From assembly GCF_033153115.1 (NCBI RefSeq), contig NW_026889779.1, positions 16,988,001-17,052,000 of the forward strand: a stretch of 64,000 nt of DNA, written 5' to 3'. This document shows, one piece after another, positions 1 to 33,144 of this stretch. Position 1 is the first letter of the stretch. Each line of letters opens with the position of its first letter. The position numbers and the translations under genes were made by a program. The notes beneath the pieces were generated by a model, which saw only the letters and a program-made list of their open reading frames with translations, was not told where the DNA came from and searched no databases. This DNA is from Saccostrea echinata. Taxonomy: Eukaryota.

Positions 1-81
1 AATGAGCACCCTTGCTGCTTTGATCAAGTTATAATGCACAACAGGGATCCAAAATAGCTACAAAAGCAGATTGTTACTCAC

Positions 82-176
82 CGCTTTGGCCAATGTTGGC
101 CGCCGTACATAACTGGGCATCTTCATCTGTGTGTAGGCCGGCCTTCTTCCTTCCGCGTCGTCCCTGCTCCGAGTCC
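82..176 (-). other. Array cassette e7 (95 nt)
   Basis: Branch-like TACTAAT (201-207); acceptor gtatatttTCAG|G; donor GCG|GTGAGT. The following intron (109 nt) crosses the unit boundary to the next e1. Confidence 0.78.
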
Positions 177-257
177 CTGAAAATATACAACTGACACAAA
201 ATTAGTACAAATTCAAAACAATGAAACAAATCGAAGAAATTCATCAACACTACATAC

Positions 258-530
258 AACAAATTTAGTGGAAAAAGAAGCTAGTAGGTGAAGACAGTTA
301 CATGGGGAAAGGGCATAAGGGAGTTAAGGGGGTGGGGATGGTTAGTCATGTTAGATTAGGGGGAGTGGATAGGAGACAGGAAAGAGAGAGAACAGAATCA
401 ATAGAATTAATTCAAAATGCTTCTCTATTAGGCTTCCTGGTTGCGGAATTGGATCCTGCTTGCTTCCACTTCTGCTGGGCTGTGCTGGGCTCAGGTGGGC
501 TCTGCTGGGCTGTGCTGCTTGCTGTGCATC
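258..530 (-). other. Array cassette e6 (acceptor fairly clear, 3' end uncertain)
   Basis: Acceptor ctctcgactctcaattgaCAG|G at 531-533. Candidate donors are GTAACT (296-301) or GTATGT (252-257). Contains a 17-nt internal duplication (471-487 and 501-517). Confidence 0.5.
304..337 (+). other. Potential G-quadruplex motif, one per array unit
   Basis: GGGGaaaGGGcataaGGGagttaaGGGGGtGGGG fits the G3+N1-7 x4 pattern. Confidence 0.55.
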
Positions 531-633
531 CTGTCAATTGAGAGTCGAGAGGTCCAAGACTGATACGGTCAACATTAATCGCTAGCGAGGAAAAGATCAA
601 GAAAGGCTACAAGAAGTCGAGTCTGAATCTTAC

Positions 634-699
634 CGCATCTTCTCATGATGGCTGCTGTTGGCATCCGGGTCGGCCAGGAACGAAAAACCTCCTCTCCTG
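634..699 (-). other. Array cassette e5 (63 or 66 nt, NAGNAG acceptor)
   Basis: Acceptor tttgatgtcttggttttgctttgtTAGCAG|G; donor GCG|GTAAGA. Confidence 0.72.
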
Positions 700-844
700 C
701 TAACAAAGCAAAACCAAGACATCAAAGTTACTGCATAGAGTTATCAGAATTCAGCATATGCAAAGAGCAAAGTTAAGATGTCCGTAACACAGGCACAAAG
801 TAATGAAAGTGGACAGAGTGCAATGTGTGCACGTTGCGACTTAC

Positions 845-942
845 CCTCACGTCTGGGATTGGCCGCAGTCCATCACAGAACTCCTGCCGGCAGGTGACGG
901 TCTGCTCTCTCTTCTGCGGAACCAGGCCAGTCTAACCCGTAC
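845..942 (-). other. Array cassette e4 (98 nt)
   Basis: Acceptor tttgacctgtaaacttctttgttaaCAG|G; donor AGG|GTAAGT; stops in all three frames. Confidence 0.75.
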
Positions 943-1051
943 CTGTTAACAAAGAAGTTTACAGGTCAAAACCAAAGTAACACTCCCCCAACACAGAATG
1001 AGTAACAAAAGTCCACAGAGTGCAAGATGTACAGATGGCATGTCTCATTAC

Positions 1052-1158
1052 CTTCAATGCTTGGGTGGGCTGCAGTACATCCCTGAACTCTTTGCACTCC
1101 CTCTGGCAGGCCGAAGTGCGCACTTCATCTCGGAATCCACAACAGCCTAATCCGGAAC
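1052..1158 (-). other. Array cassette e3 (107 nt)
   Basis: Acceptor tttgacttctgcacctttggtgtttaCAG|G; donor AAG|GTAATG. Confidence 0.75.
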
Positions 1159-1264
1159 CTGTAAACACCAAAGGTGCAGAAGTCAAAGAACTGTGCAAAG
1201 TCTGATGAAAAGACTAGACATAGAGACAGTGCACAGAGTGCAGGGCGTGCACAATGTATCTTAC

Positions 1265-1372
1265 CAACCTTGGCTCTGCCGCAGTTGACCTCTGAACTCT
1301 CAGCACTCTTGCTTTTCAGCTGAGGGTCTCCTCTTCAGAGCTGGAGGTAGAGGGCTGCACTACGCTGCATCT
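1265..1372 (-). other. Array cassette e2 (108 nt)
   Basis: Acceptor cttgatgtcttgtctttctaccgTAG|A; donor TTG|GTAAGA; stops in all three frames. Confidence 0.7.
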
Positions 1373-1475
1373 CTACGGTAGAAAGACAAGACATCAAGAG
1401 AGGTGGCGATCTTCATGTGGTGAGAATCAGAACACAAATCAAAGCAGTTAGTACAGGTTTAAACTTCAATCTTAC

Positions 1476-1565
1476 CCTCTCTTCGATGGTTGGCTGCAGT
1501 CGATCCCTGCTCACCAGAATGCTGCTGTACGTCACAGTGGGACTGACGCTTGCCTAACCATTTTC
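1476..1565 (-). other. Array cassette e1 (90 nt; unit-1 coordinates, repeats every 1593 bp)
   Basis: Acceptor tttgacctcccgactttctgtgtgtttCAG|G; donor AGG|GTAAGA. Confidence 0.75.
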
Positions 1566-4500
1566 CTGAAACACACAGAAAGTCGGGAGGTCAAATGAGC
1601 ACCCTTGCTGCTTTGATCAAGTTATAATGCACAACAGGGATCCAAAATAGCTACAAAAGCAGATTGTTACTCACCGCTTTGGCCAATGTTGGCCGCCGTA
1701 CATAACTGGGCATCTTCATCTGTGTGTAGGCCGGCCTTCTTCCTTCCGCGTCGTCCCTGCTCCGAGTCCCTGAAAATATACAACTGACACAAAATTAGTA
1801 CAAATTCAAAACAATGAAACAAATCGAAGAAATTCATCAACACTACATACAACAAATTTAGTGGAAAAAGAAGCTAGTAGGTGAAGACAGTTACATGGGG
1901 AAAGGGCATAAGGGAGTTAAGGGGGTGGGGATGGTTAGTCATGTTAGATTAGGGGGAGTGGATAGGAGACAGGAAAGAGAGAGAACAGAATCAATAGAAT
2001 TAATTCAAAATGCTTCTCTATTAGGCTTCCTGGTTGCGGAATTGGATCCTGCTTGCTTCCACTTCTGCTGGGCTGTGCTGGGCTCAGGTGGGCTCTGCTG
2101 GGCTGTGCTGCTTGCTGTGCATCCTGTCAATTGAGAGTCGAGAGGTCCAAGACTGATACGGTCAACATTAATCGCTAGCGAGGAAAAGATCAAGAAAGGC
2201 TACAAGAAGTCGAGTCTGAATCTTACCGCATCTTCTCATGATGGCTGCTGTTGGCATCCGGGTCGGCCAGGAACGAAAAACCTCCTCTCCTGCTAACAAA
2301 GCAAAACCAAGACATCAAAGTTACTGCATAGAGTTATCAGAATTCAGCATATGCAAAGAGCAAAGTTAAGATGTCCGTAACACAGGCACAAAGTAATGAA
2401 AGTGGACAGAGTGCAATGTGTGCACGTTGCGACTTACCCTCACGTCTGGGATTGGCCGCAGTCCATCACAGAACTCCTGCCGGCAGGTGACGGTCTGCTC
2501 TCTCTTCTGCGGAACCAGGCCAGTCTAACCCGTACCTGTTAACAAAGAAGTTTACAGGTCAAAACCAAAGTAACACTCCCCCAACACAGAATGAGTAACA
2601 AAAGTCCACAGAGTGCAAGATGTACAGATGGCATGTCTCATTACCTTCAATGCTTGGGTGGGCTGCAGTACATCCCTGAACTCTTTGCACTCCCTCTGGC
2701 AGGCCGAAGTGCGCACTTCATCTCGGAATCCACAACAGCCTAATCCGGAACCTGTAAACACCAAAGGTGCAGAAGTCAAAGAACTGTGCAAAGGCTGATG
2801 AAAAGACTAGACATAGAGACAGTGCACAGAGTGCAGGGCGTGCACAATGTATCTTACCAACCTTGGCTCTGCCGCAGTTGACCTCTGAACTCTCAGCACT
2901 CTTGCTTTTCAGCTGAGGGTCTCCTCTTCAGAGCTGGAGGTAGAGGGCTGCACTACGCTGCATCTCTACGGTAGAAAGACAAGACATCAAGAGAGGTGGC
3001 GATCTTCATGCGGTGAGAATCAGAACACAAATCAAAGCAGTTAGTACAGGTTTAAACTTCAATCTTACCCTCTCTTCGATGGTTGGCTGCAGTCGATCCC
3101 TGCTCACCAGAATGCTGCTGTACGTCACAGTGGGACTGACGCTTGCCTAACCATTTTCCTGAAACACACAGAAAGTCGGGAGGTCAAATGAGCACCCTTG
3201 CTGCTTTGATCAAGTTATAATGCACAACAGGGATCCAAAATAGCTACAAAAGCAGATTGTTACTCACCGCTTTGGCCAATGTTGGCCGCCGTACATAACT
3301 GGGCATCTTCATCTGTGTGTAGGCCGGCCTTCTTCCTTCCGCGTCGTCCCTGCTCCGAGTCCCTGAAAATATACAACTGACACAAAATTAGTACAAATTC
3401 AAAACAATGAAACAAATCGAAGAAATTCATCAACACTACATACAACAAATTTAGTGGAAAAAGAAGCTAGTAGGTGAAGACAGTTACATGGGGAAAGGGC
3501 ATAAGGGAGTTAAGGGGGTGGGGATGGTTAGTCATGTTAGATTAGGGGGAGTGGATAGGAGACAGGAAAGAGAGAGAACAGAATCAATAGAATTAATTCA
3601 AAATGCTTCTCTATTAGGCTTCCTGGTTGCGGAATTGGATCCTGCTTGCTTCCACTTCTGCTGGGCTGTGCTGGGCTCAGGTGGGCTCTGCTGGGCTGTG
3701 CTGCTTGCTGTGCATCCTGTCAATTGAGAGTCGAGAGGTCCAAGACTGATACGGTCAACATTAATCGCTAGCGAGGAAAAGATCAAGAAAGGCTACAAGA
3801 AGTCGAGTCTGAATCTTACCGCATCTTCTCATGATGGCTGCTGTTGGCATCCGGGTCGGCCAGGAACGAAAAACCTCCTCTCCTGCTAACAAAGCAAAAC
3901 CAAGACATCAAAGTTACTGCATAGAGTTATCAGAATTCAGCATATGCAAAGAGCAAAGTTAAGATGTCCGTAACACAGGCACAAAGTAATGAAAGTGGAC
4001 AGAGTGCAATGTGTGCACGTTGCGACTTACCCTCACGTCTGGGATTGGCCGCAGTCCATCACAGAACTCCTGCCGGCAGGTGACGGTCTGCTCTCTCTTC
4101 TGCGGAACCAGGCCAGTCTAACCCGTACCTGTTAACAAAGAAGTTTACAGGTCAAAACCAAAGTAACACTCCCCCAACACAGAATGAGTAACAAAAGTCC
4201 ACAGAGTGCAAGATGTACAGATGGCATGTCTCATTACCTTCAATGCTTGGGTGGGCTGCAGTACATCCCTGAACTCTTTGCACTCCCTCTGGCAGGCCGA
4301 AGTGCGCACTTCATCTCGGAATCCACAACAGCCTAATCCGGAACCTGTAAACACCAAAGGTGCAGAAGTCAAAGAACTGTGCAAAGGCTGATGAAAAGAC
4401 TAGACATAGAGACAGTGCACAGAGTGCAGGGCGTGCACAATGTATCTTACCAACCTTGGCTCTGCCGCAGTTGACCTCTGAACTCTCAGCACTCTTGCTT

Positions 4501-7500
4501 TTCAGCTGAGGGTCTCCTCTTCAGAGCTGGAGGTAGAGGGCTGCACTACGCTGCATCTCTACGGTAGAAAGACAAGACATCAAGAGAGGTGGCGATCTTC
4601 ATGCGGTGAGAATCAGAACACAAATCAAAGCAGTTAGTACAGGTTTAAACTTCAATCTTACCCTCTCTTCGATGGTTGGCTGCAGTCGATCCCTGCTCAC
4701 CAGAATGCTGCTGTACGTCACAGTGGGACTGACGCTTGCCTAACCATTTTCCTGAAACACACAGAAAGTCGGGAGGTCAAATGAGCACCCTTGCTGCTTT
4801 GATCAAGTTATAATGCACAACAGGGATCCAAAATAGCTACAAAAGCAGATTGTTACTCACCGCTTTGGCCAATGTTGGCCGCCGTACATAACTGGGCATC
4901 TTCATCTGTGTGTAGGCCGGCCTTCTTCCTTCCGCGTCGTCCCTGCTCCGAGTCCCTGAAAATATACAACTGACACAAAATTAGTACAAATTCAAAACAA
5001 TGAAACAAATCGAAGAAATTCATCAACACTACATACAACAAATTTAGTGGAAAAAGAAGCTAGTAGGTGAAGACAGTTACATGGGGAAAGGGCATAAGGG
5101 AGTTAAGGGGGTGGGGATGGTTAGTCATGTTAGATTAGGGGGAGTGGATAGGAGACAGGAAAGAGAGAGAACAGAATCAATAGAATTAATTCAAAATGCT
5201 TCTCTATTAGGCTTCCTGGTTGCGGAATTGGATCCTGCTTGCTTCCACTTCTGCTGGGCTGTGCTGGGCTCAGGTGGGCTCTGCTGGGCTGTGCTGCTTG
5301 CTGTGCATCCTGTCAATTGAGAGTCGAGAGGTCCAAGACTGATACGGTCAACATTAATCGCTAGCGAGGAAAAGATCAAGAAAGGCTACAAGAAGTCGAG
5401 TCTGAATCTTACCGCATCTTCTCATGATGGCTGCTGTTGGCATCCGGGTCGGCCAGGAACGAAAAACCTCCTCTCCTGCTAACAAAGCAAAACCAAGACA
5501 TCAAAGTTACTGCATAGAGTTATCAGAATTCAGCATATGCAAAGAGCAAAGTTAAGATGTCCGTAACACAGGCACAAAGTAATGAAAGTGGACAGAGTGC
5601 AATGTGTGCACGTTGCGACTTACCCTCACGTCTGGGATTGGCCGCAGTCCATCACAGAACTCCTGCCGGCAGGTGACGGTCTGCTCTCTCTTCTGCGGAA
5701 CCAGGCCAGTCTAACCCGTACCTGTTAACAAAGAAGTTTACAGGTCAAAACCAAAGTAACACTCCCCCAACACAGAATGAGTAACAAAAGTCCACAGAGT
5801 GCAAGATGTACAGATGGCATGTCTCATTACCTTCAATGCTTGGGTGGGCTGCAGTACATCCCTGAACTCTTTGCACTCCCTCTGGCAGGCCGAAGTGCGC
5901 ACTTCATCTCGGAATCCACAACAGCCTAATCCGGAACCTGTAAACACCAAAGGTGCAGAAGTCAAAGAACTGTGCAAAGGCTGATGAAAAGACTAGACAT
6001 AGAGACAGTGCACAGAGTGCAGGGCGTGCACAATGTATCTTACCAACCTTGGCTCTGCCGCAGTTGACCTCTGAACTCTCAGCACTCTTGCTTTTCAGCT
6101 GAGGGTCTCCTCTTCAGAGCTGGAGGTAGAGGGCTGCACTACGCTGCATCTCTACGGTAGAAAGACAAGACATCAAGAGAGGTGGCGATCTTCATGCGGT
6201 GAGAATCAGAACACAAATCAAAGCAGTTAGTACAGGTTTAAACTTCAATCTTACCCTCTCTTCGATGGTTGGCTGCAGTCGATCCCTGCTCACCAGAATG
6301 CTGCTGTACGTCACAGTGGGACTGACGCTTGCCTAACCATTTTCCTGAAACACACAGAAAGTCGGGAGGTCAAATGAGCACCCTTGCTGCTTTGATCAAG
6401 TTATAATGCACAACAGGGATCCAAAATAGCTACAAAAGCAGATTGTTACTCACCGCTTTGGCCAATGTTGGCCGCCGTACATAACTGGGCATCTTCATCT
6501 GTGTGTAGGCCGGCCTTCTTCCTTCCGCGTCGTCCCTGCTCCGAGTCCCTGAAAATATACAACTGACACAAAATTAGTACAAATTCAAAACAATGAAACA
6601 AATCGAAGAAATTCATCAACACTACATACAACAAATTTAGTGGAAAAAGAAGCTAGTAGGTGAAGACAGTTACATGGGGAAAGGGCATAAGGGAGTTAAG
6701 GGGGTGGGGATGGTTAGTCATGTTAGATTAGGGGGAGTGGATAGGAGACAGGAAAGAGAGAGAACAGAATCAATAGAATTAATTCAAAATGCTTCTCTAT
6801 TAGGCTTCCTGGTTGCGGAATTGGATCCTGCTTGCTTCCACTTCTGCTGGGCTGTGCTGGGCTCAGGTGGGCTCTGCTGGGCTGTGCTGCTTGCTGTGCA
6901 TCCTGTCAATTGAGAGTCGAGAGGTCCAAGACTGATACGGTCAACATTAATCGCTAGCGAGGAAAAGATCAAGAAAGGCTACAAGAAGTCGAGTCTGAAT
7001 CTTACCGCATCTTCTCATGATGGCTGCTGTTGGCATCCGGGTCGGCCAGGAACGAAAAACCTCCTCTCCTGCTAACAAAGCAAAACCAAGACATCAAAGT
7101 TACTGCATAGAGTTATCAGAATTCAGCATATGCAAAGAGCAAAGTTAAGATGTCCGTAACACAGGCACAAAGTAATGAAAGTGGACAGAGTGCAATGTGT
7201 GCACGTTGCGACTTACCCTCACGTCTGGGATTGGCCGCAGTCCATCACAGAACTCCTGCCGGCAGGTGACGGTCTGCTCTCTCTTCTGCGGAACCAGGCC
7301 AGTCTAACCCGTACCTGTTAACAAAGAAGTTTACAGGTCAAAACCAAAGTAACACTCCCCCAACACAGAATGAGTAACAAAAGTCCACAGAGTGCAAGAT
7401 GTACAGATGGCATGTCTCATTACCTTCAATGCTTGGGTGGGCTGCAGTACATCCCTGAACTCTTTGCACTCCCTCTGGCAGGCCGAAGTGCGCACTTCAT

Positions 7501-10500
7501 CTCGGAATCCACAACAGCCTAATCCGGAACCTGTAAACACCAAAGGTGCAGAAGTCAAAGAACTGTGCAAAGGCTGATGAAAAGACTAGACATAGAGACA
7601 GTGCACAGAGTGCAGGGCGTGCACAATGTATCTTACCAACCTTGGCTCTGCCGCAGTTGACCTCTGAACTCTCAGCACTCTTGCTTTTCAGCTGAGGGTC
7701 TCCTCTTCAGAGCTGGAGGTAGAGGGCTGCACTACGCTGCATCTCTACGGTAGAAAGACAAGACATCAAGAGAGGTGGCGATCTTCATGCGGTGAGAATC
7801 AGAACACAAATCAAAGCAGTTAGTACAGGTTTAAACTTCAATCTTACCCTCTCTTCGATGGTTGGCTGCAGTCGATCCCTGCTCACCAGAATGCTGCTGT
7901 ACGTCACAGTGGGACTGACGCTTGCCTAACCATTTTCCTGAAACACACAGAAAGTCGGGAGGTCAAATGAGCACCCTTGCTGCTTTGATCAAGTTATAAT
8001 GCACAACAGGGATCCAAAATAGCTACAAAAGCAGATTGTTACTCACCGCTTTGGCCAATGTTGGCCGCCGTACATAACTGGGCATCTTCATCTGTGTGTA
8101 GGCCGGCCTTCTTCCTTCCGCGTCGTCCCTGCTCCGAGTCCCTGAAAATATACAACTGACACAAAATTAGTACAAATTCAAAACAATGAAACAAATCGAA
8201 GAAATTCATCAACACTACATACAACAAATTTAGTGGAAAAAGAAGCTAGTAGGTGAAGACAGTTACATGGGGAAAGGGCATAAGGGAGTTAAGGGGGTGG
8301 GGATGGTTAGTCATGTTAGATTAGGGGGAGTGGATAGGAGACAGGAAAGAGAGAGAACAGAATCAATAGAATTAATTCAAAATGCTTCTCTATTAGGCTT
8401 CCTGGTTGCGGAATTGGATCCTGCTTGCTTCCACTTCTGCTGGGCTGTGCTGGGCTCAGGTGGGCTCTGCTGGGCTGTGCTGCTTGCTGTGCATCCTGTC
8501 AATTGAGAGTCGAGAGGTCCAAGACTGATACGGTCAACATTAATCGCTAGCGAGGAAAAGATCAAGAAAGGCTACAAGAAGTCGAGTCTGAATCTTACCG
8601 CATCTTCTCATGATGGCTGCTGTTGGCATCCGGGTCGGCCAGGAACGAAAAACCTCCTCTCCTGCTAACAAAGCAAAACCAAGACATCAAAGTTACTGCA
8701 TAGAGTTATCAGAATTCAGCATATGCAAAGAGCAAAGTTAAGATGTCCGTAACACAGGCACAAAGTAATGAAAGTGGACAGAGTGCAATGTGTGCACGTT
8801 GCGACTTACCCTCACGTCTGGGATTGGCCGCAGTCCATCACAGAACTCCTGCCGGCAGGTGACGGTCTGCTCTCTCTTCTGCGGAACCAGGCCAGTCTAA
8901 CCCGTACCTGTTAACAAAGAAGTTTACAGGTCAAAACCAAAGTAACACTCCCCCAACACAGAATGAGTAACAAAAGTCCACAGAGTGCAAGATGTACAGA
9001 TGGCATGTCTCATTACCTTCAATGCTTGGGTGGGCTGCAGTACATCCCTGAACTCTTTGCACTCCCTCTGGCAGGCCGAAGTGCGCACTTCATCTCGGAA
9101 TCCACAACAGCCTAATCCGGAACCTGTAAACACCAAAGGTGCAGAAGTCAAAGAACTGTGCAAAGGCTGATGAAAAGACTAGACATAGAGACAGTGCACA
9201 GAGTGCAGGGCGTGCACAATGTATCTTACCAACCTTGGCTCTGCCGCAGTTGACCTCTGAACTCTCAGCACTCTTGCTTTTCAGCTGAGGGTCTCCTCTT
9301 CAGAGCTGGAGGTAGAGGGCTGCACTACGCTGCATCTCTACGGTAGAAAGACAAGACATCAAGAGAGGTGGCGATCTTCATGCGGTGAGAATCAGAACAC
9401 AAATCAAAGCAGTTAGTACAGGTTTAAACTTCAATCTTACCCTCTCTTCGATGGTTGGCTGCAGTCGATCCCTGCTCACCAGAATGCTGCTGTACGTCAC
9501 AGTGGGACTGACGCTTGCCTAACCATTTTCCTGAAACACACAGAAAGTCGGGAGGTCAAATGAGCACCCTTGCTGCTTTGATCAAGTTATAATGCACAAC
9601 AGGGATCCAAAATAGCTACAAAAGCAGATTGTTACTCACCGCTTTGGCCAATGTTGGCCGCCGTACATAACTGGGCATCTTCATCTGTGTGTAGGCCGGC
9701 CTTCTTCCTTCCGCGTCGTCCCTGCTCCGAGTCCCTGAAAATATACAACTGACACAAAATTAGTACAAATTCAAAACAATGAAACAAATCGAAGAAATTC
9801 ATCAACACTACATACAACAAATTTAGTGGAAAAAGAAGCTAGTAGGTGAAGACAGTTACGTGGGGAAAGGGCATAAGGGAGTTAAGGGGGTGGGGATGGT
9901 TAGTCATGTTAGATTAGGGGGAGTGGATAGGAGACAGGAAAGAGAGAGAACAGAATCAATAGAATTAATTCAAAATGCTTCTCTATTAGGCTTCCTGGTT
10001 GCGGAATTGGATCCTGCTTGCTTCCACTTCTGCTGGGCTGTGCTGGGCTCAGGTGGGCTCTGCTGGGCTGTGCTGCTTGCTGTGCATCCTGTCAATTGAG
10101 AGTCGAGAGGTCCAAGACTGATACGGTCAACATTAATCGCTAGCGAGGAAAAGATCAAGAAAGGCTACAAGAAGTCGAGTCTGAATCTTACCGCATCTTC
10201 TCATGATGGCTGCTGTTGGCATCCGGGTCGGCCAGGAACGAAAAACCTCCTCTCCTGCTAACAAAGCAAAACCAAGACATCAAAGTTACTGCATAGAGTT
10301 ATCAGAATTCAGCATATGCAAAGAGCAAAGTTAAGATGTCCGTAACACAGGCACAAAGTAATGAAAGTGGACAGAGTGCAATGTGTGCACGTTGCGACTT
10401 ACCCTCACGTCTGGGATTGGCCGCAGTCCATCACAGAACTCCTGCCGGCAGGTGACGGTCTGCTCTCTCTTCTGCGGAACCAGGCCAGTCTAACCCGTAC

Positions 10501-19500: not shown

Positions 19501-22500
19501 AGAGAGAACAGAATCAATAGAATTAATTCAAAATGCTTCTCTATTAGGCTTCCTGGTTGCGGAATTGGATCCTGCTTGCTTCCACTTCTGCTGGGCTGTG
19601 CTGGGCTCAGGTGGGCTCTGCTGGGCTGTGCTGCTTGCTGTGCATCCTGTCAATTGAGAGTCGAGAGGTCCAAGACTGATACGGTCAACATTAATCGCTA
19701 GCGAGGAAAAGATCAAGAAAGGCTACAAGAAGTCGAGTCTGAATCTTACCGCATCTTCTCATGATGGCTGCTGTTGGCATCCGGGTCGGCCAGGAACGAA
19801 AAACCTCCTCTCCTGCTAACAAAGCAAAACCAAGACATCAAAGTTACTGCATAGAGTTATCAGAATTCAGCATATGCAAAGAGCAAAGTTAAGATGTCCG
19901 TAACACAGGCACAAAGTAATGAAAGTGGACAGAGTGCAATGTGTGCACGTTGCGACTTACCCTCACGTCTGGGATTGGCCGCAGTCCATCACAGAACTCC
20001 TGCCGGCAGGTGACGGTCTGCTCTCTCTTCTGCGGAACCAGGCCAGTCTAACCCGTACCTGTTAACAAAGAAGTTTACAGGTCAAAACCAAAGTAACACT
20101 CCCCCAACACAGAATGAGTAACAAAAGTCCACAGAGTGCAAGATGTACAGATGGCATGTCTCATTACCTTCAATGCTTGGGTGGGCTGCAGTACATCCCT
20201 GAACTCTTTGCACTCCCTCTGGCAGGCCGAAGTGCGCACTTCATCTCGGAATCCACAACAGCCTAATCCGGAACCTGTAAACACCAAAGGTGCAGAAGTC
20301 AAAGAACTGTGCAAAGGCTGATGAAAAGACTAGACATAGAGACAGTGCACAGAGTGCAGGGCGTGCACAATGTATCTTACCAACCTTGGCTCTGCCGCAG
20401 TTGACCTCTGAACTCTCAGCACTCTTGCTTTTCAGCTGAGGGTCTCCTCTTCAGAGCTGGAGGTAGAGGGCTGCACTACGCTGCATCTCTACGGTAGAAA
20501 GACAAGACATCAAGAGAGGTGGCGATCTTCATGCGGTGAGAATCAGAACACAAATCAAAGCAGTTAGTACAGGTTTAAACTTCAATCTTACCCTCTCTTC
20601 GATGGTTGGCTGCAGTCGATCCCTGCTCACCAGAATGCTGCTGTACGTCACAGTGGGACTGACGCTTGCCTAACCATTTTCCTGAAACACACAGAAAGTC
20701 GGGAGGTCAAATGAGCACCCTTGCTGCTTTGATCAAGTTATAATGCACAACAGGGATCCAAAATAGCTACAAAAGCAGATTGTTACTCACCGCTTTGGCC
20801 AATGTTGGCCGCCGTACATAACTGGGCATCTTCATCTGTGTGTAGGCCGGCCTTCTTCCTTCCGCGTCGTCCCTGCTCCGAGTCCCTGAAAATATACAAC
20901 TGACACAAAATTAGTACAAATTCAAAACAATGAAACAAATCGAAGAAATTCATCAACACTACATACAACAAATTTAGTGGAAAAAGAAGCTAGTAGGTGA
21001 AGACAGTTACATGGGGAAAGGGCATAAGGGAGTTAAGGGGGTGGGGATGGTTAGTCATGTTAGATTAGGGGGAGTGGATAGGAGACAGGAAAGAGAGAGA
21101 ACAGAATCAATAGAATTAATTCAAAATGCTTCTCTATTAGGCTTCCTGGTTGCGGAATTGGATCCTGCTTGCTTCCACTTCTGCTGGGCTGTGCTGGGCT
21201 CAGGTGGGCTCTGCTGGGCTGTGCTGCTTGCTGTGCATCCTGTCAATTGAGAGTCGAGAGGTCCAAGACTGATACGGTCAACATTAATCGCTAGCGAGGA
21301 AAAGATCAAGAAAGGCTACAAGAAGTCGAGTCTGAATCTTACCGCATCTTCTCATGATGGCTGCTGTTGGCATCCGGGTCGGCCAGGAACGAAAAACCTC
21401 CTCTCCTGCTAACAAAGCAAAACCAAGACATCAAAGTTACTGCATAGAGTTATCAGAATTCAGCATATGCAAAGAGCAAAGTTAAGATGTCCGTAACACA
21501 GGCACAAAGTAATGAAAGTGGACAGAGTGCAATGTGTGCACGTTGCGACTTACCCTCACGTCTGGGATTGGCCGCAGTCCATCACAGAACTCCTGCCGGC
21601 AGGTGACGGTCTGCTCTCTCTTCTGCGGAACCAGGCCAGTCTAACCCGTACCTGTTAACAAAGAAGTTTACAGGTCAAAACCAAAGTAACACTCCCCCAA
21701 CACAGAATGAGTAACAAAAGTCCACAGAGTGCAAGATGTACAGATGGCATGTCTCATTACCTTCAATGCTTGGGTGGGCTGCAGTACATCCCTGAACTCT
21801 TTGCACTCCCTCTGGCAGGCCGAAGTGCGCACTTCATCTCGGAATCCACAACAGCCTAATCCGGAACCTGTAAACACCAAAGGTGCAGAAGTCAAAGAAC
21901 TGTGCAAAGGCTGATGAAAAGACTAGACATAGAGACAGTGCACAGAGTGCAGGGCGTGCACAATGTATCTTACCAACCTTGGCTCTGCCGCAGTTGACCT
22001 CTGAACTCTCAGCACTCTTGCTTTTCAGCTGAGGGTCTCCTCTTCAGAGCTGGAGGTAGAGGGCTGCACTACGCTGCATCTCTACGGTAGAAAGACAAGA
22101 CATCAAGAGAGGTGGCGATCTTCATGCGGTGAGAATCAGAACACAAATCAAAGCAGTTAGTACAGGTTTAAACTTCAATCTTACCCTCTCTTCGATGGTT
22201 GGCTGCAGTCGATCCCTGCTCACCAGAATGCTGCTGTACGTCACAGTGGGACTGACGCTTGCCTAACCATTTTCCTGAAACACACAGAAAGTCGGGAGGT
22301 CAAATGAGCACCCTTGCTGCTTTGATCAAGTCATAATGCACAACAGGGATCCAAAATAGCTACAAAAGCAGATTGTTACTCACCGCTTTGGCCAATGTTG
22401 GCCGCCGTACATAACTGGGCATCTTCATCTGTGTGTAGGCCGGCCTTCTTCCTTCCGCGTCGTCCTTGCTCCGAGTCCCTGAAAATATACAACTGACACA

Positions 22501-25500
22501 AAATTAGTACAAATTCAAAACAATGAAACAAATCGAAGAAATTCATCAACACTACATACAACAAATTTAGTGGAAAAAGAAGCTAGTAGGTGAAGACAGT
22601 TACATGGGGAAAGGGCATAAGGGAGTTAAGGGGGTGGGGATGGTTACTCATGTTAGATTAGGGGGAGTGGATAGGAGACAGGAAAGAGAGAGAACAGAAT
22701 CAATAGAATTAATTCAAAATGCTTCTCTATTAGGCTTCCTGGTTGCGGAATTGGATCCTGCTTGCTTCCACTTCTGCTGGGCTGTGCTGGGCTCAGGTGG
22801 GCTCTGCTGGGCTGTGCTGCTTGCTGTGCATCCTGTCAATTGAGAGTCGAGAGGTCCAAGACTGATACGGTCAACATTAATCGCTAGCGAGGAAAAGATC
22901 AAGAAAGGCTACAAGAAGTCGAGTCTGAATCTTACCGCATCTTCTCATGATGGCTGATGTTGGCATCCGGGTCGGCCAGGAACGAAAAACCTCCTCTCCT
23001 GCTAACAAAGCAAAACCAAGACATCAAAGTTACTGCATAGAGTTATCAGAATTCAGCATATGCAAAGAGCAAAGTTAAGATGTCCGTAACACAGGCACAA
23101 AGTAATGAAAGTGGACAGAGTGCAATGTGTGCACGTTGCGACTTACCCTCACGTCTGGGATTGGCCGCAGTCCATCACAGAACTCCTGCCGGCAGGTGAC
23201 GGTCTGCTCTCTCTTCTGCGGAACCAGGCCAGTCTAACCCGTACCTGTTAACAAAGAAGTTTACAGGTCAAAACCAAAGTAACACTCCCCCAACACAGAA
23301 TGAGTAACAAAAGTCCACAGAGTGCAAGATGTACAGATGGCATGTCTCATTACCTTCAATGCTTGGGTGGGCTGCAGTACATCCCTGAACTCTTTGCACT
23401 CCCTCTGGCAGGCCGAAGTGCGCACTTCATCTCGGAATCCACAACAGCCTAATCCGGAACCTGTAAACACCAAAGGTGCAGAAGTCAAAGAACTGTGCAA
23501 AGGCTGATGAAAAGACTAGACATAGAGACAGTGCACAGAGTGCAGGGCGTGCACAATGTATCTTACCAACCTTGGCTCTGCCGCAGTTGACCTCTGAACT
23601 CTCAGCACTCTTGCTTTTCAGCTGAGGGTCTCCTCTTCAGAGCTGGAGGTAGAGGGCTGCACTACGCTGCATCTCTACGGTAGAAAGACAAGACATCAAG
23701 AGAGGTGGCGATCTTCATGCGGTGAGAATCAGAACACAAATCAAAGCAGTTAGTACAGGTTTAAACTTCAATCTTACCCTCTCTTCGATGGTTGGCTGCA
23801 GTCGATCCCTGCTCACCAGAATGCTGCTGTACGTCACAGTGGGACTGACGCTTGCCTAACCATTTTCCTGAAACACACAGAAAGTCGGGAGGTCAAATGA
23901 GCACCCTTGCTGCTTTGATCAAGTTATAATGCACAACAGGGATCCAAAATAGCTACAAAAGCAGATTGTTACTCACCGCTTTGGCCAATGTTGGCCGCCG
24001 TACATAACTGGGCATCTTCATCTGTGTGTAGGCCGGCCTTCTTCCTTCCGCGTCGTCCCTGCTCCGAGTCCCTGAAAATATACAACTGACACAAAATTAG
24101 TACAAATTCAAAACAATGAAACAAATCGAAGAAATTCATCAACACTACATACAACAAATTTAGTGGAAAAAGAAGCTAGTAGGTGAAGACAGTTACATGG
24201 GGAAAGGGCATAAGGGAGTTAAGGGGGTGGGGATGGTTAGTCATGTTAGATTAGGGGGAGTGGATAGGAGACAGGAAAGAGAGAGAACAGAATCAATAGA
24301 ATTAATTCAAAATGCTTCTCTATTAGGCTTCCTGGTTGCGGAATTGGATCCTGCTTGCTTCCACTTCTGCTGGGCTGTGCTGGGCTCAGGTGGGCTCTGC
24401 TGGGCTGTGCTGCTTGCTGTGCATCCTGTCAATTGAGAGTCGAGAGGTCCAAGACTGATACGGTCAACATTAATCGCTAGCGAGGAAAAGATCAAGAAAG
24501 GCTACAAGAAGTCGAGTCTGAATCTTACCGCATCTTCTCATGATGGCTGCTGTTGGCATCCGGGTCGGCCAGGAACGAAAAACCTCCTCTCCTGCTAACA
24601 AAGCAAAACCAAGACATCAAAGTTACTGCATAGAGTTATCAGAATTCAGCATATGCAAAGAGCAAAGTTAAGATGTCCGTAACACAGGCACAAAGTAATG
24701 AAAGTGGACAGAGTGCAATGTGTGCACGTTGCGACTTACCCTCACGTCTGGGATTGGCCGCAGTCCATCACAGAACTCCTGCCGGCAGGTGACGGTCTGC
24801 TCTCTCTTCTGCGGAACCAGGCCAGTCTAACCCGTACCTGTTAACAAAGAAGTTTACAGGTCAAAACCAAAGTAACACTCCCCCAACACAGAATGAGTAA
24901 CAAAAGTCCACAGAGTGCAAGATGTACAGATGGCATGTCTCATTACCTTCAATGCTTGGGTGGGCTGCAGTACATCCCTGAACTCTTTGCACTCCCTCTG
25001 GCAGGCCGAAGTGCGCACTTCATCTCGGAATCCACAACAGCCTAATCCGGAACCTGTAAACACCAAAGGTGCAGAAGTCAAAGAACTGTGCAAAGGCTGA
25101 TGAAAAGACTAGACATAGAGACAGTGCACAGAGTGCAGGGCGTGCACAATGTATCTTACCAACCTTGGCTCTGCCGCAGTTGACCTCTGAACTCTCAGCA
25201 CTCTTGCTTTTCAGCTGAGGGTCTCCTCTTCAGAGCTGGAGGTAGAGGGCTGCACTACGCTGCATCTCTATGGTAGAAAGACAAGACATCAAGAGAGGTG
25301 GCGATCTTCATGCGGTGAGAATCAGAACACAAATCAAAGCAGTTAGTACAGGTTTAAACTTCAATCTTACCCTCTCTTCGATGGTTGGCTGCAGTCGATC
25401 CCTGCTCACCAGAATGCTGCTGTACGTCACAGTGGGACTGACGCTTGCCTAACCATTTTCCTGAAACACACAGAAAGTCGGGAGGTCAAATGAGCACCCT

Positions 25501-28500
25501 TGCTGCTTTGATCAAGTTATAATGCACAACAGGGATCCAAAATAGCTACAAAAGCAGATTGTTACTCACCGCTTTGGCCAATGTTGGCCGCCGTACATAA
25601 CTGGGCATCTTCATCTGTGTGTAGGCCGGCCTTCTTCCTTCCGCGTCGTCCCTGCTCCGAGTCCCTGAAAATATACAACTGACACAAAATTAGTACAAAT
25701 TCAAAACAATGAAACAAATCGAAGAAATTCATCAACACTACATACAACAAATTTAGTGGAAAAAGAAGCTAGTAGGTGAAGACAGTTACATGGGGAAAGG
25801 GCATAAGGGAGTTAAGGGGGTGGGGATGGTTAGTCATGTTAGATTAGGGGGAGTGGATAGGAGACAGGAAAGAGAGAGAACAGAATCAATAGAATTAATT
25901 CAAAATGCTTCTCTATTAGGCTTCCTGGTTGCGGAATTGGATCCTGCTTGCTTCCACTTCTGCTGGGCTGTGCTGGGCTCAGGTGGGCTCTGCTGGGCTG
26001 TGCTGCTTGCTGTGCATCCTGTCAATTGAGAGTCGAGAGGTCCAAGACTGATACGGTCAACATTAATCGCTAGCGAGGAAAAGATCAAGAAAGGCTACAA
26101 GAAGTCGAGTCTGAATCTTACCGCATCTTCTCATGATGGCTGCTGTTGGCATCCGGGTCGGCCAGGAACGAAAAACCTCCTCTCCTGCTAACAAAGCAAA
26201 ACCAAGACATCAAAGTTACTGCATAGAGTTATCAGAATTCAGCATATGCAAAGAGCAAAGTTAAGATGTCCGTAACACAGGCACAAAGTAATGAAAGTGG
26301 ACAGAGTGCAATGTGTGCACGTTGCAACTTACCCTCACGTCTGGGATTGGCCGCAGTCCATCACAGAACTCCTGCCGGCAGGTGACGGTCTGCTCTCTCT
26401 TCTGCGGAACCAGGCCAGTCTAACCCGTACCTGTTAACAAAGAAGTTTACAGGTCAAAACCAAAGTAACACTCCCCCAACACAGAATGAGTAACAAAAGT
26501 CCACAGAGTGCAAGATGTACAGATGGCATGTCTCATTACCTTCAATGCTTGGGTGGGCTGCAGTACATCCCTGAACTCTTTGCACTCCCTCTGGCAGGCC
26601 GAAGTGCGCACTTCATCTCGGAATCCACAACAGCCTAATCCGGAACCTGTAAACACCAAAGGTGCAGAAGTCAAAGAACTGTGCAAAGGCTGATGAAAAG
26701 ACTAGACATAGAGACAGTGCACAGAGTGCAGGGCGTGCACAATGTATCTTACCAACCTTGGCTCTGCCGCAGTTGACCTCTGAACTCTCAGCACTCTTGC
26801 TTTTCAGCTGAGGGTCTCCTCTTCAGAGCTGGAGGTAGAGGGCTGCACTACGCTGCATCTCTACGGTAGAAAGACAAGACATCAAGAGAGGTGGCGATCT
26901 TCATGCGGTGAGAATCAGAACACAAATCAAAGCAGTTAGTACAGGTTTAAACTTCAATCTTACCCTCTCTTCGATGGTTGGCTGCAGTCGATCCCTGCTC
27001 ACCAGAATGCTGCTGTACGTCACAGTGGGACTGACGCTTGCCTAACCATTTTCCTGAAACACACAGAAAGTCGGGAGGTCAAATGAGCACCCTTGCTGCT
27101 TTGATCAAGTTATAATGCACAACAGGGATCCAAAATAGCTACAAAAGCAGATTGTTACTCACCGCTTTGGCCAATGTTGGCCGCCGTACATAACTGGGCA
27201 TCTTCATCTGTGTGTAGGCCGGCCTTCTTCCTTCCGCGTCGTCCCTGCTCCGAGTCCCTGAAAATATACAACTGACACAAAATTAGTACAAATTCAAAAC
27301 AATGAAACAAATCGAAGAAATTCATCAACACTACATACAACAAATTTAGTGGAAAAAGAAGCTAGTAGGTGAAGACAGTTACATGGGGAAAGGGCATAAG
27401 GGAGTTAAGGGGGTGGGGATGGTTACTCATGTTAGATTAGGGGGAGTGGATAGGAGACAGGAAAGAGAGAGAACAGAATCAATAGAATTAATTCAAAATG
27501 CTTCTCTATTAGGCTTCCTGGTTGCGGAATTGGATCCTGCTTGCTTCCACTTCTGCTGGGCTGTGCTGGGCTCAGGTGGGCTCTGCTGGGCTGTGCTGCT
27601 TGCTGTGCATCCTGTCAATTGAGAGTCGAGAGGTCCAAGACTGATACGGTCAACATTAATTGCTAGCGAGGAAAAGATCAAGAAAGGCTACAAGAAGTCG
27701 AGTCTGAATCTTACCGCATCTTCTCATGATGGCTGCTGTTGGCATCCGGGTCGGCCAGGAACGAAAAACCTCCTCTCCTGCTAACAAAGCAAAACCAAGA
27801 CATCAAAGTTACTGCATAGAGTTATCAGAATTCAGCATATGCAAAGAGCAAAGTTAAGATGTCCGTAACACAGGCACAAAGTAATGAAAGTGGACAGAGT
27901 GCAATGTGTGCACGTTGCGACTTACCCTCACGTCTGGGATTGGCCGCAGTCCATCACAGAACTCCTGCCGGCAGGTGACGGTCTGCTCTCTCTTCTGCGG
28001 AACCAGGCCAGTCTAACCCGTACCTGTTAACAAAGAAGTTTACAGGTCAAAACCAAAGTAACACTCCCCCAACACAGAATGAGTAACAAAAGTCCACAGA
28101 GTGCAAGATGTACAGATGGCATGTCTCATTACCTTCAATGCTTGGGTGGGCTGCAGTACATCCCTGAACTCTTTGCACTCCCTCTGGCAGGCCGAAGTGC
28201 GCACTTCATCTCGGAATCCACAACAGCCTAATCCGGAACCTGTAAACACCAAAGGTGCAGAAGTCAAAGAACTGTGCAAAGGCTGATGAAAAGACTAGAC
28301 ATAGAGACAGTGCACAGAGTGCAGGGCGTGCACAATGTATCTTACCAACCTTGGCTCTGCCGCAGTTGACCTCTGAACTCTCAGCACTCTTGCTTTTCAG
28401 CTGAGGGTCTCCTCTTCAGAGCTGGAGGTAGAGGGCTGCACTACGCTGCATCTCTACGGTAGAAAGACAAGACATCAAGAGAGGTGGCGATCTTCATGCG

Positions 28501-29904
28501 GTGAGAATCAGAACACAAATCAAAGCAGTTAGTACAGGTTTAAACTTCAATCTTACCCTCTCTTCGATGGTTGGCTGCAGTCGATCCCTGCTCACCAGAA
28601 TGCTGCTGTACGTCACAGTGGGACTGACGCTTGCCTAACCATTTTCCTGAAACACACAGAAAGTCGGGAGGTCAAATGAGCACCCTTGCTGCTTTGATCA
28701 AGTTATAATGCACAACAGGGATCCAAAATAGCTACAAAAGCAGATTGTTACTCACCGCTTTGGCCAATGTTGGCCGCCGTACATAACTGGGCATCTTCAT
28801 CTGTGTGTAGGCCGGCCTTCTTCCTTCCGCGTCGTCCCTGCTCCGAGTCCCTGAAAATATACAACTGACACAAAATTAGTACAAATTCAAAACAATGAAA
28901 CAAATCGAAGAAATTCATCAACACTACATACAACAAATTTAGTGGAAAAAGAAGCTAGTAGGTGAAGACAGTTACATGGGGAAAGGGCATAAGGGAGTTA
29001 AGGGGGTGGGGATGGTTAGTCATGTTAGATTAGGGGGAGTGGATAGGAGACAGGAAAGAGAGAGAACAGAATCAATAGAATTAATTCAAAATGCTTCTCT
29101 ATTAGGCTTCCTGGTTGCGGAATTGGATCCTGCTTGCTTCCACTTCTGCTGGGCTGTGCTGGGCTCAGGTGGGCTCTGCTGGGCTGTGCTGCTTGCTGTG
29201 CATCCTGTCAATTGAGAGTCGAGAGGTCCAAGACTGATACGGTCAACATTAATCGCTAGCGAGGAAAAGATCAAGAAAGGCTACAAGAAGTCGAGTCTGA
29301 ATCTTACCGCATCTTCTCATGATGGCTGCTGTTGGCATCCGGGTCGGCCAGGAACGAAAAACCTCCTCTCCTGCTAACAAAGCAAAACCAAGACATCAAA
29401 GTTACTGCATAGAGTTATCAGAATTCAGCATATGCAAAGAGCAAAGTTAAGATGTCCGTAACACAGGCACAAAGTAATGAAAGTGGACAGAGTGCAATGT
29501 GTGCACGTTGCGACTTACCCTCACGTCTGGGATTGGCCGCAGTCCATCACAGAACTCCTGCCGGCAGGTGACGGTCTGCTCTCTCTTCTGCGGAACCAGG
29601 CCAGTCTAACCCGTACCTGTTAACAAAGAAGTTTACAGGTCAAAACCAAAGTAACACTCCCCCAACACAGAATGAGTAACAAAAGTCCACAGAGTGCAAG
29701 ATGTACAGATGGCATGTCTCATTACCTTCAATGCTTGGGTGGGCTGCAGTACATCCCTGAACTCTTTGCACTCCCTCTGGCAGGCCGAAGTGCGCACTTC
29801 ATCTCGGAACCCACAACAGCCTAATCCGGAACCTGTAAACACCAAAGGTGCAGAAGTCAAAGAGCTGTGACCTAACAGAAGAATGAAGTTGGAAGTCACT
29901 CGGA

Positions 29905-30350
29905 AGGAAAGTCAGAAAATTAGGACACATTTAAAAAGCTCCTGCTAATTTGAAATAATGTTTAGAGAAAAAATTACAAACAGATTCATCTTCTCTCTGC
30001 TAAACATAAAACAATTAGAGATATGAAGGTTAGAATTTTAATACAGTTGAATAGGTCTCATAAAGTTGTACCTGTTTTGAAGTTTAATAAAAATATGAAC
30101 ATTTTCTTTGAATCTAAGTTAAATGAAAATGGAGAATATTTTGGACAAGGTTATAGGGAATGTCAAAGTCAGAAAATTATGACACAGGTTAATAAAATTT
30201 AATAAAATGGGGAATATTGAAGTGAAGGCCATGGGAAAGGTCGAAGTTCAGAAAATAATGAGTTTAATAAAATGGGAAATATTGAGGTCAAGGCAGTAAA
30301 AGTCAAAGTTCAGAAAATAATAACACAATTCAATAAAATTGGGAAAAGCT
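29905..30350. repeat. Degenerate AT-rich short repeats next to the array end
   Basis: Recurring gtcaaagt(t)cagaaaat-a--acaca ... aataaaatggg-aatattga near 29908, 30162, 30240 and 30302. Confidence 0.6.
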
Positions 30351-30878
30351 GCTACTAATATGTATTAGTTTATGATATGATAAAAAAAAAAATTTAAAGA
30401 GTTACTTTGAAGCTGAGCTTAACACACACACACACACACAAAATGAAATGACTTTGCTCTTCTCCCTCAAAAAAAAAACCCCTCTTGTATGTTCTTAAGA
30501 GTCATTTATGAATAGAAATATATATGAAGGATTTTTTTCAGCTTCGCAAAAAAGCCCGAATCTGAAATATTTTTAGTGAGCATGAAACACTCCCGCCCTT
30601 CTGAGAAAAAAGAAATTCTGTATCTCTTCATTTTTGCTTTTTGATATTGCATGGGGATTTTGAGAAAAGGAGACATAGAAAGAGAGAAAACTAAAGTGTT
30701 GATAACATCACTTAAACACCTATTGTTATCCACTTACAGGAAAAGGTACTTTTCACAAACAAGTGGTTTTAAACTGTTTGGTCAACTGATTGTTCGCTTA
30801 ACTTTACTGTTAAACCCCACTGTAGGTTTTCCTCTTGCAACACATTTCACAGGAATAGCAAGGACTTATAATATAGAT

Positions 30879-31000
30879 ACTCACTAAAAAGAATTCCTCC
30901 GCTTTATAAGTAATTTACATCTTAAAATCTCCAAAATCAGTGAGTTAAATACTGCCCGCCATTACATTGAGAACACTGCTCAGGGTATACACCGGAAGTG
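30879..31000 (-). promoter_or_regulatory. Candidate Pol II promoter and non-coding first exon, module 1
   Basis: ETS consensus ACCGGAAGTG at 30991-31000; YY1-like ATGGCG on the minus strand at 30956-30963; donor GTGAGT at 30879-30884. Confidence 0.5.
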
Positions 31001-31306
31001 TGTTCAAATGACTTGATGAATACATTAGGGGTTAGATAGAAAAAATGAAATCTAGAATGAATATTCTTAGATATGTCAACTGTTACTCATAAAATAAGTG
31101 ATTTTTTGTTTGGGTGTGATTTTTTTTTAAATTTTGTGATCGTTGAGAGAGAGAGAGAGATTTTACAGCTGATGAAATCTTGCTTCTATGACCTTGAGTA
31201 GTAACATTGGGTACTTTTGCTTCTGTTACCTTACGGTCTCTTTTGAAGGATTGTCCTATTATTTATTCACACGAAAGATGAATATATTTAAAAAAAAAAG
31301 GGGGGG

Positions 31307-31375
31307 GTCGCATAATATTTCGTCCGCCTCGTTTAAAGGTCCGGGGGGACCTAATACGATAACACATAAGGTCCA
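31307..31375 (+). mobile_element. Solo copy of the terminal repeat of the 34038-37273 element
   Basis: gtcgcataatatttcgtccgcctcgtttaaaggtccggggggacctaatacgata matches 34044 onward. Confidence 0.7.
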
Positions 31376-31954
31376 CCAGGATATTATGTGCCTGTCAATA
31401 CATTTGAAAACATATCAATACATTTTATAATCTTTATTTACAACAATGATCAAATATGTTTAAAGATATTATTAATAAAATATTATCAATGGTTTTATGT
31501 AGACATTGGCTCTGCAAAATACAATGAAATCAGTTCAGATTCACCGGCTAAAAGATTGAATTTTTGGCGATTCATGTTTTAAAATCTTATTGACCCAGCA
31601 ACTACTAAACGCACTACCAGCATTTTGTAATTCGCTTTAAAATGAAAAGAGAAAAATGAACAGCGATTGTTTTTTTTGCCGTCTAAAACAAAAAATGTAT
31701 GTGAACTAAAAAAAAAAGAAAAGAAAAAAGAAGTTAAAAGTGTCAACATGAGAATCCACAAAACTATTCCATCAAAGCGTTAATTTGAAACTTTGGACAA
31801 ATCTCAGTTATTATCTTTATCTATAAACCGTTTACACATAAACGATCGAGCTTTCTTTACAATTTTCAATGACCACTCGTATGATTGTTCGTTTTATTTT
31901 ACGGTTAAGCCCACTAGGTTTTCTCTGTTAGCATGAAAAAAAAAATTATAAAAT

Positions 31955-32089
31955 GATTACTCAAAAAACTTTCACTTATTTTTTTTTTTTAGAAGTTAGT
32001 ATCTTGAAATCTTCAGAATAAGTGAAAACTGAAAAAAAGAAGCCCTGCTCAAATATGTAATAAGTCTACTGTTCACGATACTGGAAGTG
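31955..32089 (-). promoter_or_regulatory. Decayed paralog of the promoter module (module 2)
   Basis: ACTGGAAGTG at 32080-32089 (CpG lost); actcaa in place of actcac; shares ttagtatcttgaaa with module 3. Confidence 0.35.
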
Positions 32090-33011: not shown

Positions 33012-33144
33012 ACTCACAAAGAATTATGTTTCTCCCCTTTATGTGCAATTAGTATCTTGAAAGAAACACATGTATCTTGAAAAGGACTGCGCGCCATTTA
33101 TACAAATATTTACTAAGAGTAGTGTTCACAACTTACCGGAAGTG
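33012..33144 (-). promoter_or_regulatory. Candidate Pol II promoter and first exon, module 3
   Basis: ACCGGAAGTG at 33135-33144; CGCCATTT (YY1-like) at 33092-33099; donor GTGAGT at 33012-33017. Confidence 0.5.

Follow-up and report, generated by a model that had tools for sequence, protein, structure and literature searches.

The left part of a 64-kb stretch of the Saccostrea echinata genome (positions 16,988,001 to 17,052,000 of contig NW_026889779.1, here C30; this stretch is the window) consists of head-to-tail copies of a 1593-bp unit. The locus raises the question of whether a satellite can itself be an array of exons and introns. An earlier note, made from the letters alone, had proposed exactly this: a giant spliced non-coding RNA of ~131 exons in 30 kb, read from the minus strand. 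The analysis leaves us fairly confident that the locus is a transcribed, constitutively spliced macrosatellite that gives a non-coding repeat-exon RNA, and that it is one of a family of internally homogenised arrays. It is the RNA evidence, rather than sequence statistics, that lifts the exon-intron array above chance.

Splicing of the 1593-bp unit

The window and neighbouring DNA of the same contig were examined for the ends of the array. The whole array spans C30:16,964,915-17,017,878 (window coordinates -23,085 to 29,878), corresponding to ~53 kb and 33.25 units. Autocorrelation confirmed the tandem period, with a single sharp peak at 1593 bp and 97% self-identity at this lag over 1-31000 (99.6-100% inside the array). 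The array had been thought to fill 1-31000; its right end is at 29878, and a further 23,085 bp lie before the window start. The units have zero indels and an exact period and are ~99.9% identical, with ~17 variable interior positions. The G+C content was 47-48% in the array and 31-35% in the flanks. Tandem Repeats Finder (TRF), run with a longest period of 500, does not report the array. The locus has the properties of a macrosatellite: head-to-tail kilobase units, high identity between units and the arraying of the same repeat at several loci.

A search of public sequencing runs, using a query that was 40% array, returned five small runs that held 0.16-0.21 of the sampled words. This share equals the exon fraction of the query, and the runs therefore hold mature RNA, not DNA. 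Assembled contigs of four of these runs, from two studies and under two organism labels, were then placed on one unit plus 4.4 kb of upstream flank. Contigs of 910-932 nt matched the array at 99.9-100% (0-1 mismatches) with six stretches removed, and the removal was seen in all four runs; in run X1, the exon chain was split over two contigs of 470 and 450 nt. The removed stretches are bounded by CT..AC on the plus strand, that is, by GT..AG on the minus strand. Judged from this orientation, the minus strand is the transcribed strand. The k-mer depth reached 52-328 within the array but was ~0 over the 4.4-kb flank. No spliced or near-identical copy of the array was found elsewhere in the genome, where the next best match was 81%; the contigs therefore derive from mature RNA of the C30 array.

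The array and the features of its upstream-most unit, in minus-strand order, are as follows; a caret marks a splice border, and e6 and e7 are the names that the earlier note gave to parts of the long exon.

1..29878, minus strand: the portion of the 1593-bp array that lies in the window; in minus-strand order, the whole array opens within the intron that precedes E3 and closes within the one that follows E4
29726..29832, minus strand: exon E3, 107 nt; joint 29613/29723 and back-joint; recurs every 1593 bp down to 1052-1158
29617..29725, minus strand: intron of 109 nt, GT..AG; contigs of all four runs
29519..29616, minus strand: exon E4, 98 nt, closed in all three frames; contigs
29371..29518, minus strand: intron of 148 nt, GT..AG; contigs
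29308..29370, minus strand: exon E5, 63 nt; contigs
29205..29307, minus strand: intron of 103 nt, GT..AG; contigs
28756..29204, minus strand: long exon E6/7, 449 nt, comprising the earlier e6, a T-rich middle and e7; contiguous in contigs (pieces 28755-29122 and 29103-29203, 0-1 mismatches)
29093..29127, minus strand: 35-nt island TCCAATTCCGCAACCAGGAAGCCTAATAGAGAAGC within E6/7; shared without change by arrays at three C9 sites, on C10 and on C30
28835..28869, minus strand: conserved TATATTTTCAG^GGAC segment, the unused seventh acceptor; also in ~550-bp-period arrays on C54 and C62
28746..28777, minus strand: 32-nt island GCGGCCAACATTGGCCAAAGCG^GTGAGTAACA across the E6/7 donor; identical in six arrays
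28647..28755, minus strand: intron of 109 nt, GT..AG; contigs
28557..28646, minus strand: exon E1, 90 nt; contigs
28454..28556, minus strand: intron of 103 nt, GT..AG; contigs
28350..28453, minus strand: exon E2, 104 nt, closed in all frames, donor AAG^GTTGGT; back-joint
28240..28349, minus strand: intron of 110 nt, from E2 to E3 of the next unit; contigs

The junctions that had been predicted at 1476/1372, 1052/942, 845/696, 634/530 and 1675/1565 were seen exactly in the RNA-derived contigs. The predicted joint at 1265/1158 was also formed, but from the donor AAG^GTTGGT at 1269, 4 nt upstream of the G^GTAAGA at 1265 to which it had been assigned. A seventh predicted acceptor (ttttcag^GGACTCGG, 28850 in the last unit) was not used in the contigs, where e6 runs on into e7 as a single exon of 449 nt. 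This leaves six exons per unit; the window contains 112 of them and the full array 200, as against the ~131 of the earlier note. All six donor/acceptor pairs are present in every window copy with GT and AG intact, and all six introns (103, 110, 109, 148, 103 and 109 nt) are removed in the contigs. The spliced unit thus measures 90 + 104 + 107 + 98 + 63 + 449 = 911 nt.

The sixth joint runs back from 28350 to 29832 (back-joint 29829/28347, shift +3) and connects E2 to the E3 of the next unit. The ends of the contigs overlap by 20 nt, so that the exon chain closes a 911-nt cycle without a break where a unit-length gene would end. The exons are therefore joined across unit boundaries: the unit-crossing chain that had been proposed is seen in the E2-to-E3 joint and in the uninterrupted long exon. 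The RNA variants at 28882, 28907 and 29552 do not match genomic variants between units and are of no use as proof that many units are expressed.

The signal in the sequence by itself was modest. Specifically, the unit has 8 donor-like sites where 3.1 are expected (P ~0.01), and acceptor-like sites show no enrichment. The 200 splice-site pairs amount to only 6 independent observations, since common descent has left the units near-identical.

A family of arrays with invariant elements

At least seven other arrays of the same family occur in the genome, in addition to dispersed copies; reversed-pattern controls always gave 0. The arrays are as follows.

C9:36.135 Mb: 2.7 units, period ~1535 bp
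C9:47.316-47.382 Mb: ~44 units, period ~1.5 kb
C9:48.978-48.998 Mb: 14 units, period ~1.5 kb
C9:50.753-50.776 Mb: 18 units, period 1.33 kb
C10:7.286-7.311 Mb: 17 units, period ~1.5 kb
C265: at least 19 units, period ~1.49 kb
C1:33.96 Mb: 4 units, period ~1.5 kb

Two further arrays with a period of ~550 bp, at C62:7,952,422-7,972,284 and C54:36,782,520-36,791,428, carry the TATATTTTCAGGGAC segment of the long exon (the start of its e7 part). They may be the long-exon monomer repeated alone, because a 449-nt exon and a 109-nt intron add up to 558 bp.

Conservation across the family was evaluated using segments chosen from the alignment of the C30 array with C9:36.135 Mb, the other arrays being compared by pattern searches (counts and pattern-length matches). 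The 35-mer in the long exon had 293 matches and was exact in C30, C10 and three C9 arrays, with 0 matches for its reversed control. The 32-mer across the long-exon donor had 158 matches and was exact in six arrays, with GT in 100/100 among the matches listed. The arrays that share these two elements are only 80-87% alike in the long exon; at 13-20% divergence, a rough estimate puts the number of invariant 32-35-mers expected by chance over the unit well under 0.01. Similarly, two acceptor regions were kept with 1-2 mismatches and with AG in all among the matches listed. At the three tested sites, AG or GT was kept in all copies among the matches listed. As to the controls, two from the interior of E3 were found only in C30 and C9:36, and one from the interior of an intron was kept at 30/33 positions. 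The comparison suggests a conservation specific to splice sites.

The unit is itself a higher-order repeat of six exon-plus-intron monomers of ~200 bp, the sixth of which is carried by the long exon. These monomers are only 37-66% alike, with exon and intron parts diverging equally, and 6/6 keep the GT and AG that are used. In 5/6, AC[N]GC[R]GCC stands exactly 16 nt before the donor. The 3' motif GC(A/G)GCC-AACC is complementary to the 5' motif GGUUAGGC in the exons at 28557-28646, 29519-29616 and 29726-29832 (minus strand). Across ten homologous exons, a nine-pair stem that would close the exon had 89% of its cells paired versus 79% in shuffles (1/500) and 22-51% when slid, and three of its pairs had changed on both sides. 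These sequences are paralogues, and the energy of the stem is weak. The cassette exons may thus close on themselves through the GGUUAGGC/GC(A/G)GCC-AACC stem, which we offer only as a lead, and the ACNGCRGCC motif may be one half of it.

The transcript and its alternatives

The contigs show that the spliceosome takes six introns of 103-148 nt, all canonical GT-AG, out of each 1593-bp unit and joins the last exon of one unit to the first exon of the next, yielding a non-coding repeat-exon RNA. Because the unit contains no AATAAA or ATTAAA, it is probable that the polymerase continues from one unit into the next; this absence on the sense strand upholds the statement of the earlier note that the unit holds no poly(A) signal. 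Molecules would then span several units, and a full run would turn a primary transcript of ~53 kb into a spliced RNA of ~30 kb with up to 200 exons. Termination would probably take place in the diverged and AT-rich copies that follow the array.

On the minus strand, the array starts ~46 nt before the E3 acceptor and ends just past the E4 donor. Downstream lie two copies of a diverged, AT-rich 2-kb unit, 89% alike mutually and ~71% identical to the array, in which exon-like blocks with AG and GT borders remain and one donor has been lost. Beyond them is AT-rich sequence with AATAAA motifs. As far as the letters go, this order of diverged copies followed by AATAAA-bearing DNA would fit a transcription unit that ends beyond the array. 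Each diverged unit is closed by a short tandem repeat of ~32 bp (AAGGATCTGTGACCCTGTTTT...; L009:2900-3260 and 4860-5220, that is, within C30:16,960,900-16,963,220, minus strand). The DNA upstream of the array is unrelated to it and CpG-rich. Across C30:16,956,001-17,028,000, the ratio of observed to expected CpG (CpG o/e) steps from 0.14-0.18 in the downstream flank, including the diverged units, to 0.47-0.49 over the array and then to 0.73-0.87 in the 10 kb upstream of it, which suggests differing germline methylation histories of the three.

Several points weigh against a multi-unit RNA with a role of its own. Assembled contigs cannot reveal the length, ends, strand or level of the molecules; the run type is a program's guess, and the tissue and library of the runs are not given. 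Essentially no colinear RNA depth and no first exon were seen in the 4.4 kb upstream of the array in the contigs of the four runs. An internal start in every unit is possible, because neither a first exon nor a promoter was found upstream. With a reference of one unit, a linear multi-unit RNA and a circular RNA of 911 nt give the same E2-to-E3 joint. Between the C30 array and the one paralogue aligned with it, C9:36.135 Mb, exons were 82.5% identical with 93 gap columns and introns 83.3% identical with 10 gap columns. Splice dinucleotides were kept at 10/12 in this paralogue and at 23/26 in dispersed copies, which is no better than the neutral expectation. Exons thus diverge as fast as introns, and therefore the RNA looks free of constraint over most of its sequence and could itself be a by-product; that exons are no better conserved than introns between arrays also counts against a sequence-specific function of the exons. 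Finally, gene conversion could have produced the conserved islands, or they could be elements at the level of the DNA.

The comparison of exons and introns bears directly on whether the RNA is a functionless by-product. According to this explanation, an amplified piece of an old multi-exon locus is transcribed by chance, and its splice sites survive only because the copies are very young and homogenised. We hold this for a tenable reading that we nevertheless lean against. The near-identity of the units, which reduces the 200 sites to six observations, is what it predicts, as are exons that evolve like introns, splice-site retention near the neutral expectation and the decay of the diverged copies downstream (low CpG o/e, one donor lost). 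It accounts less readily for two 32-35-nt islands that are identical in five to six arrays differing by 13-20% around them, for six dissimilar monomers that all keep their used splice sites, and for the maintenance of several large arrays together with high expression.

The absence of an upstream first exon is also what would be expected of tandem separate genes for long non-coding RNAs (lncRNAs). Each unit would then have its own promoter inside the long exon, made up of the 35-mer and the TATATTTT box, and produce a spliced RNA of ~0.7-0.9 kb, unit-crossing being leaky read-through. The long exon does resemble a 3' end, a spacer and a 5' end in succession, and the two elements that flank the spacer are the best-conserved parts of the family. 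The promoter motifs are putative: the 35-nt island contains CCAAT-like and GGAA motifs, and the TATATTTT box, ~15 nt before the earlier e7, may be TATA-like. In run X1, the T-rich middle of the long exon, which would be the spacer, had a contig depth of 231 versus 328 for the other exons. This is somewhat lower, as separate genes would have it, but at such a depth most molecules must read through the T-rich middle. Indeed, the spacer was at roughly half or more of the exon depth and contiguous with both sides in all four runs, and AATAAA and ATTAAA are absent from the whole unit. We therefore regard separate genes as rather unlikely.

The closed 911-nt cycle could likewise mean that the main product is a circular RNA of this length, formed by back-splicing within one unit, from the E2 donor to the E3 acceptor. 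Of all the joints, the back-joint has the best support, and tandem repeats provide the flanking complementary or identical introns. The same junction arises, however, by ordinary forward splicing to the next unit with no need of a special mechanism, and we give the circular form little credence as the main product.

Translation of the spliced RNA was evaluated on three units with their exons joined in order. Each frame contained 34 stops, or ~11 per unit, and the longest open stretch was 108 codons. The 911-nt spliced period is not a multiple of 3, and the C9 paralogue is equally closed to translation. Pfam returned no family for the open pieces of every exon, and the protein database returned no match for the 79-aa antisense open reading frame (ORF) of the long exon, its largest. 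The unit has no usable ORF, in line with the non-coding product that had been proposed, and the two cassettes described as closed in all frames are E2 and E4. Coding readings through alternative TTAG acceptors opened some cassettes and were dropped, as the RNA uses CAG acceptors. A protein-coding gene with repeated exons, or a polycistronic RNA of small ORFs, is barely credible. Several cassettes share an open frame that ends in phase 0 and has a repeated D-x-L-Q-P-like motif, and the long exon ends one frame with TAATAG, at which a 33-codon ATG ORF of the C9 copy ends (read from the alignment). This ORF stops after 12 codons in C30, and the frames are broken differently in the paralogue, where exons carry large indels; the number of stops, the length of the period and the lack of Pfam or protein-database matches argue in the same direction.

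The end of E1 differs between copies. In dispersed and other-array copies on C1, C2, C12, C28, C56, C70 and C126, it reads GCCAACCATGGAAGAAAGG^GTAAG, with a Kozak-like ATG 9 nt before the donor; the position of the ATG reads ATC in the C30 array and ATT in the flank copies. The ATG is possibly the trace of a coding ancestor.

A host of small RNAs was also considered, in which the introns would carry small nucleolar RNAs (snoRNAs) or microRNAs (miRNAs), as in SNHG14 or C19MC, or the transcript would be a precursor of Piwi-interacting RNAs. Repeated exon-intron units with introns of 103-148 nt are indeed the architecture of a snoRNA host array. On the array, Rfam returned no family at the gathering score or at E<5, and a match to ST7-OT4_3 (13.8 bits, E 2.2) was set aside as chance. 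The introns contained no C/D-box arrangement on either strand and no hairpins of the mirtron type, folding no better than shuffles (z +0.1 to +2.5). The earlier note had recognised no hosted snoRNA or miRNA, and none emerged from these tests. We regard a small-RNA host as highly improbable.

As to function, our best guess is a repeat-built lncRNA in which only a few short elements, the splice sites and the two islands, would be under constraint while the bulk of the sequence drifts freely. Any effect of such an RNA would come from its many repeats or from its being transcribed and spliced.

Other features were recorded outside the array. Just upstream of it, a motif of ~60 bp (ttattttctgaac...tttcccattttattaaa) occurs three times at 30100-30340 (minus strand), and a 38-nt piece at 30157-30194 matches RNA contigs that diverge on either side. 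ETS plus YY1 'promoter modules' at 30780-33310 showed no RNA depth in the contigs, which is no proof of absence. At 34036-34300, contigs of run X3 reached a depth of 389 with 3-6 mismatches and loose ends; their probable source is a repeat element that is expressed at another place. On the minus strand, the strand of the array RNA, a pair of paralogous single-exon ORFs (480 and 471 aa) lies at 41711-43153 and 52552-53967, and the nearer of them ends 11.8 kb upstream of the array. By eye, we take both to be BACK/Kelch-like and the ORF at 54739-55113, upstream of the second, to be BTB-like. An ORF fragment with HSPDLNPCDYFLWG, a sequence typical of Tc1/mariner transposases, is located at 60849-61190 on the plus strand. 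TRF reported small tandem repeats at 39949-40283 (33 bp), 59021-59299 (32 bp) and 62495-62734 (53 bp). A tRNA scan found no tRNA genes, and the downstream flank contains no convincing ORFs.

Known systems and the meaning of a spliced satellite

The nearest known designs are the tandem snoRNA host arrays: SNHG14, which hosts SNORD116 and SNORD115, and those at 14q32 and in the rat. SNHG14 consists of tandem snoRNA-bearing units (PMC8789076). In contrast, the oyster introns carry no snoRNA or known small RNA, and each unit has six exons instead of one or two. Moreover, the oyster units are 99.9% identical, and several loci carry the same design as members of a satellite family.

Macrosatellites in general have kilobase tandem units that are highly homogenised (PMC3599962), and NBL2 is one that gives a non-coding RNA (PMC6009586). 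The transcribed macrosatellites DXZ4, D4Z4 and NBL2/TNBL of humans share kilobase homogenised units and a non-coding RNA with the oyster array, to which they are analogues of a looser kind than SNHG14. We know of no regular multi-exon modules spliced end to end in those units, unlike in the oyster unit.

In the lncRNA Firre, function depends on a short element that is present many times in a single RNA (PMC4391730). RNAs of this type are a plausible model for ~200 copies of the oyster exon motifs, although a looser analogue, as the oyster repeats are whole spliced exons rather than repeats within exons. The repeats of Xist and the architectural RNAs hsr-omega and Sat III also function through many copies of a short element. 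Stellate and Su(Ste) of Drosophila are tandem units of 1-3 kb with introns, gene-derived, homogenised and present at several loci; each unit there is a gene of its own with a promoter of its own, and Stellate has an ORF. The oyster unit differs in having no ORF and in an exon chain that runs across units.

In oysters, satellites with long monomers scattered at many loci have been described, with monomers that reach 3.3 kb in C. gigas and, in C. angulata, 8.6 kb (PMC8268682, PMC11136912). The main texts of these two papers contain neither 'intron' nor 'exon', contain 'transcri' once and discuss no satellite transcripts. The satellites of Crassostrea and Ostrea are likened to the C30 array by description, not by sequence. 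A literature search returned no account of spliced satellite DNA in oysters. The usual view of satellites is of DNA that is mostly silent and not spliced, and the known role of repeat-exon lncRNAs is mainly that of snoRNA or miRNA hosts. At this locus, the satellite unit itself is a complete module of six exons and six introns. It is spliced precisely and abundantly, its design is found at several loci, and its short invariant elements stand in a sequence that otherwise drifts.

A more far-reaching view of the family is speculative and, taken as a whole, quite unlikely. The satellite family would consist of self-contained exon-intron modules, each array being a gene for an lncRNA of tens to hundreds of near-identical exons. 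Selection would act on the splice sites, the two islands and perhaps the GGUUAGGC/GCAGCC-AACC exon-closing stem. The RNA would work as a multivalent scaffold or sink, and not through its bulk sequence; its partners would be splicing factors, exon-junction complexes or a different RNA-binding protein.

If the molecules do span many units, they would be, to our knowledge, among the most exon-rich non-coding RNAs described, and the array would be a natural system in which 200 identical splicing events follow one another. Such a system could be used to study exon definition and splicing on perfect repeats, how concerted evolution keeps the signals, and whether repeat number tunes the function of the RNA. 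For annotation, the array carries a warning: repeat masking and the discarding of multi-mapping reads would hide the real spliced RNA that arrays of this kind can produce.

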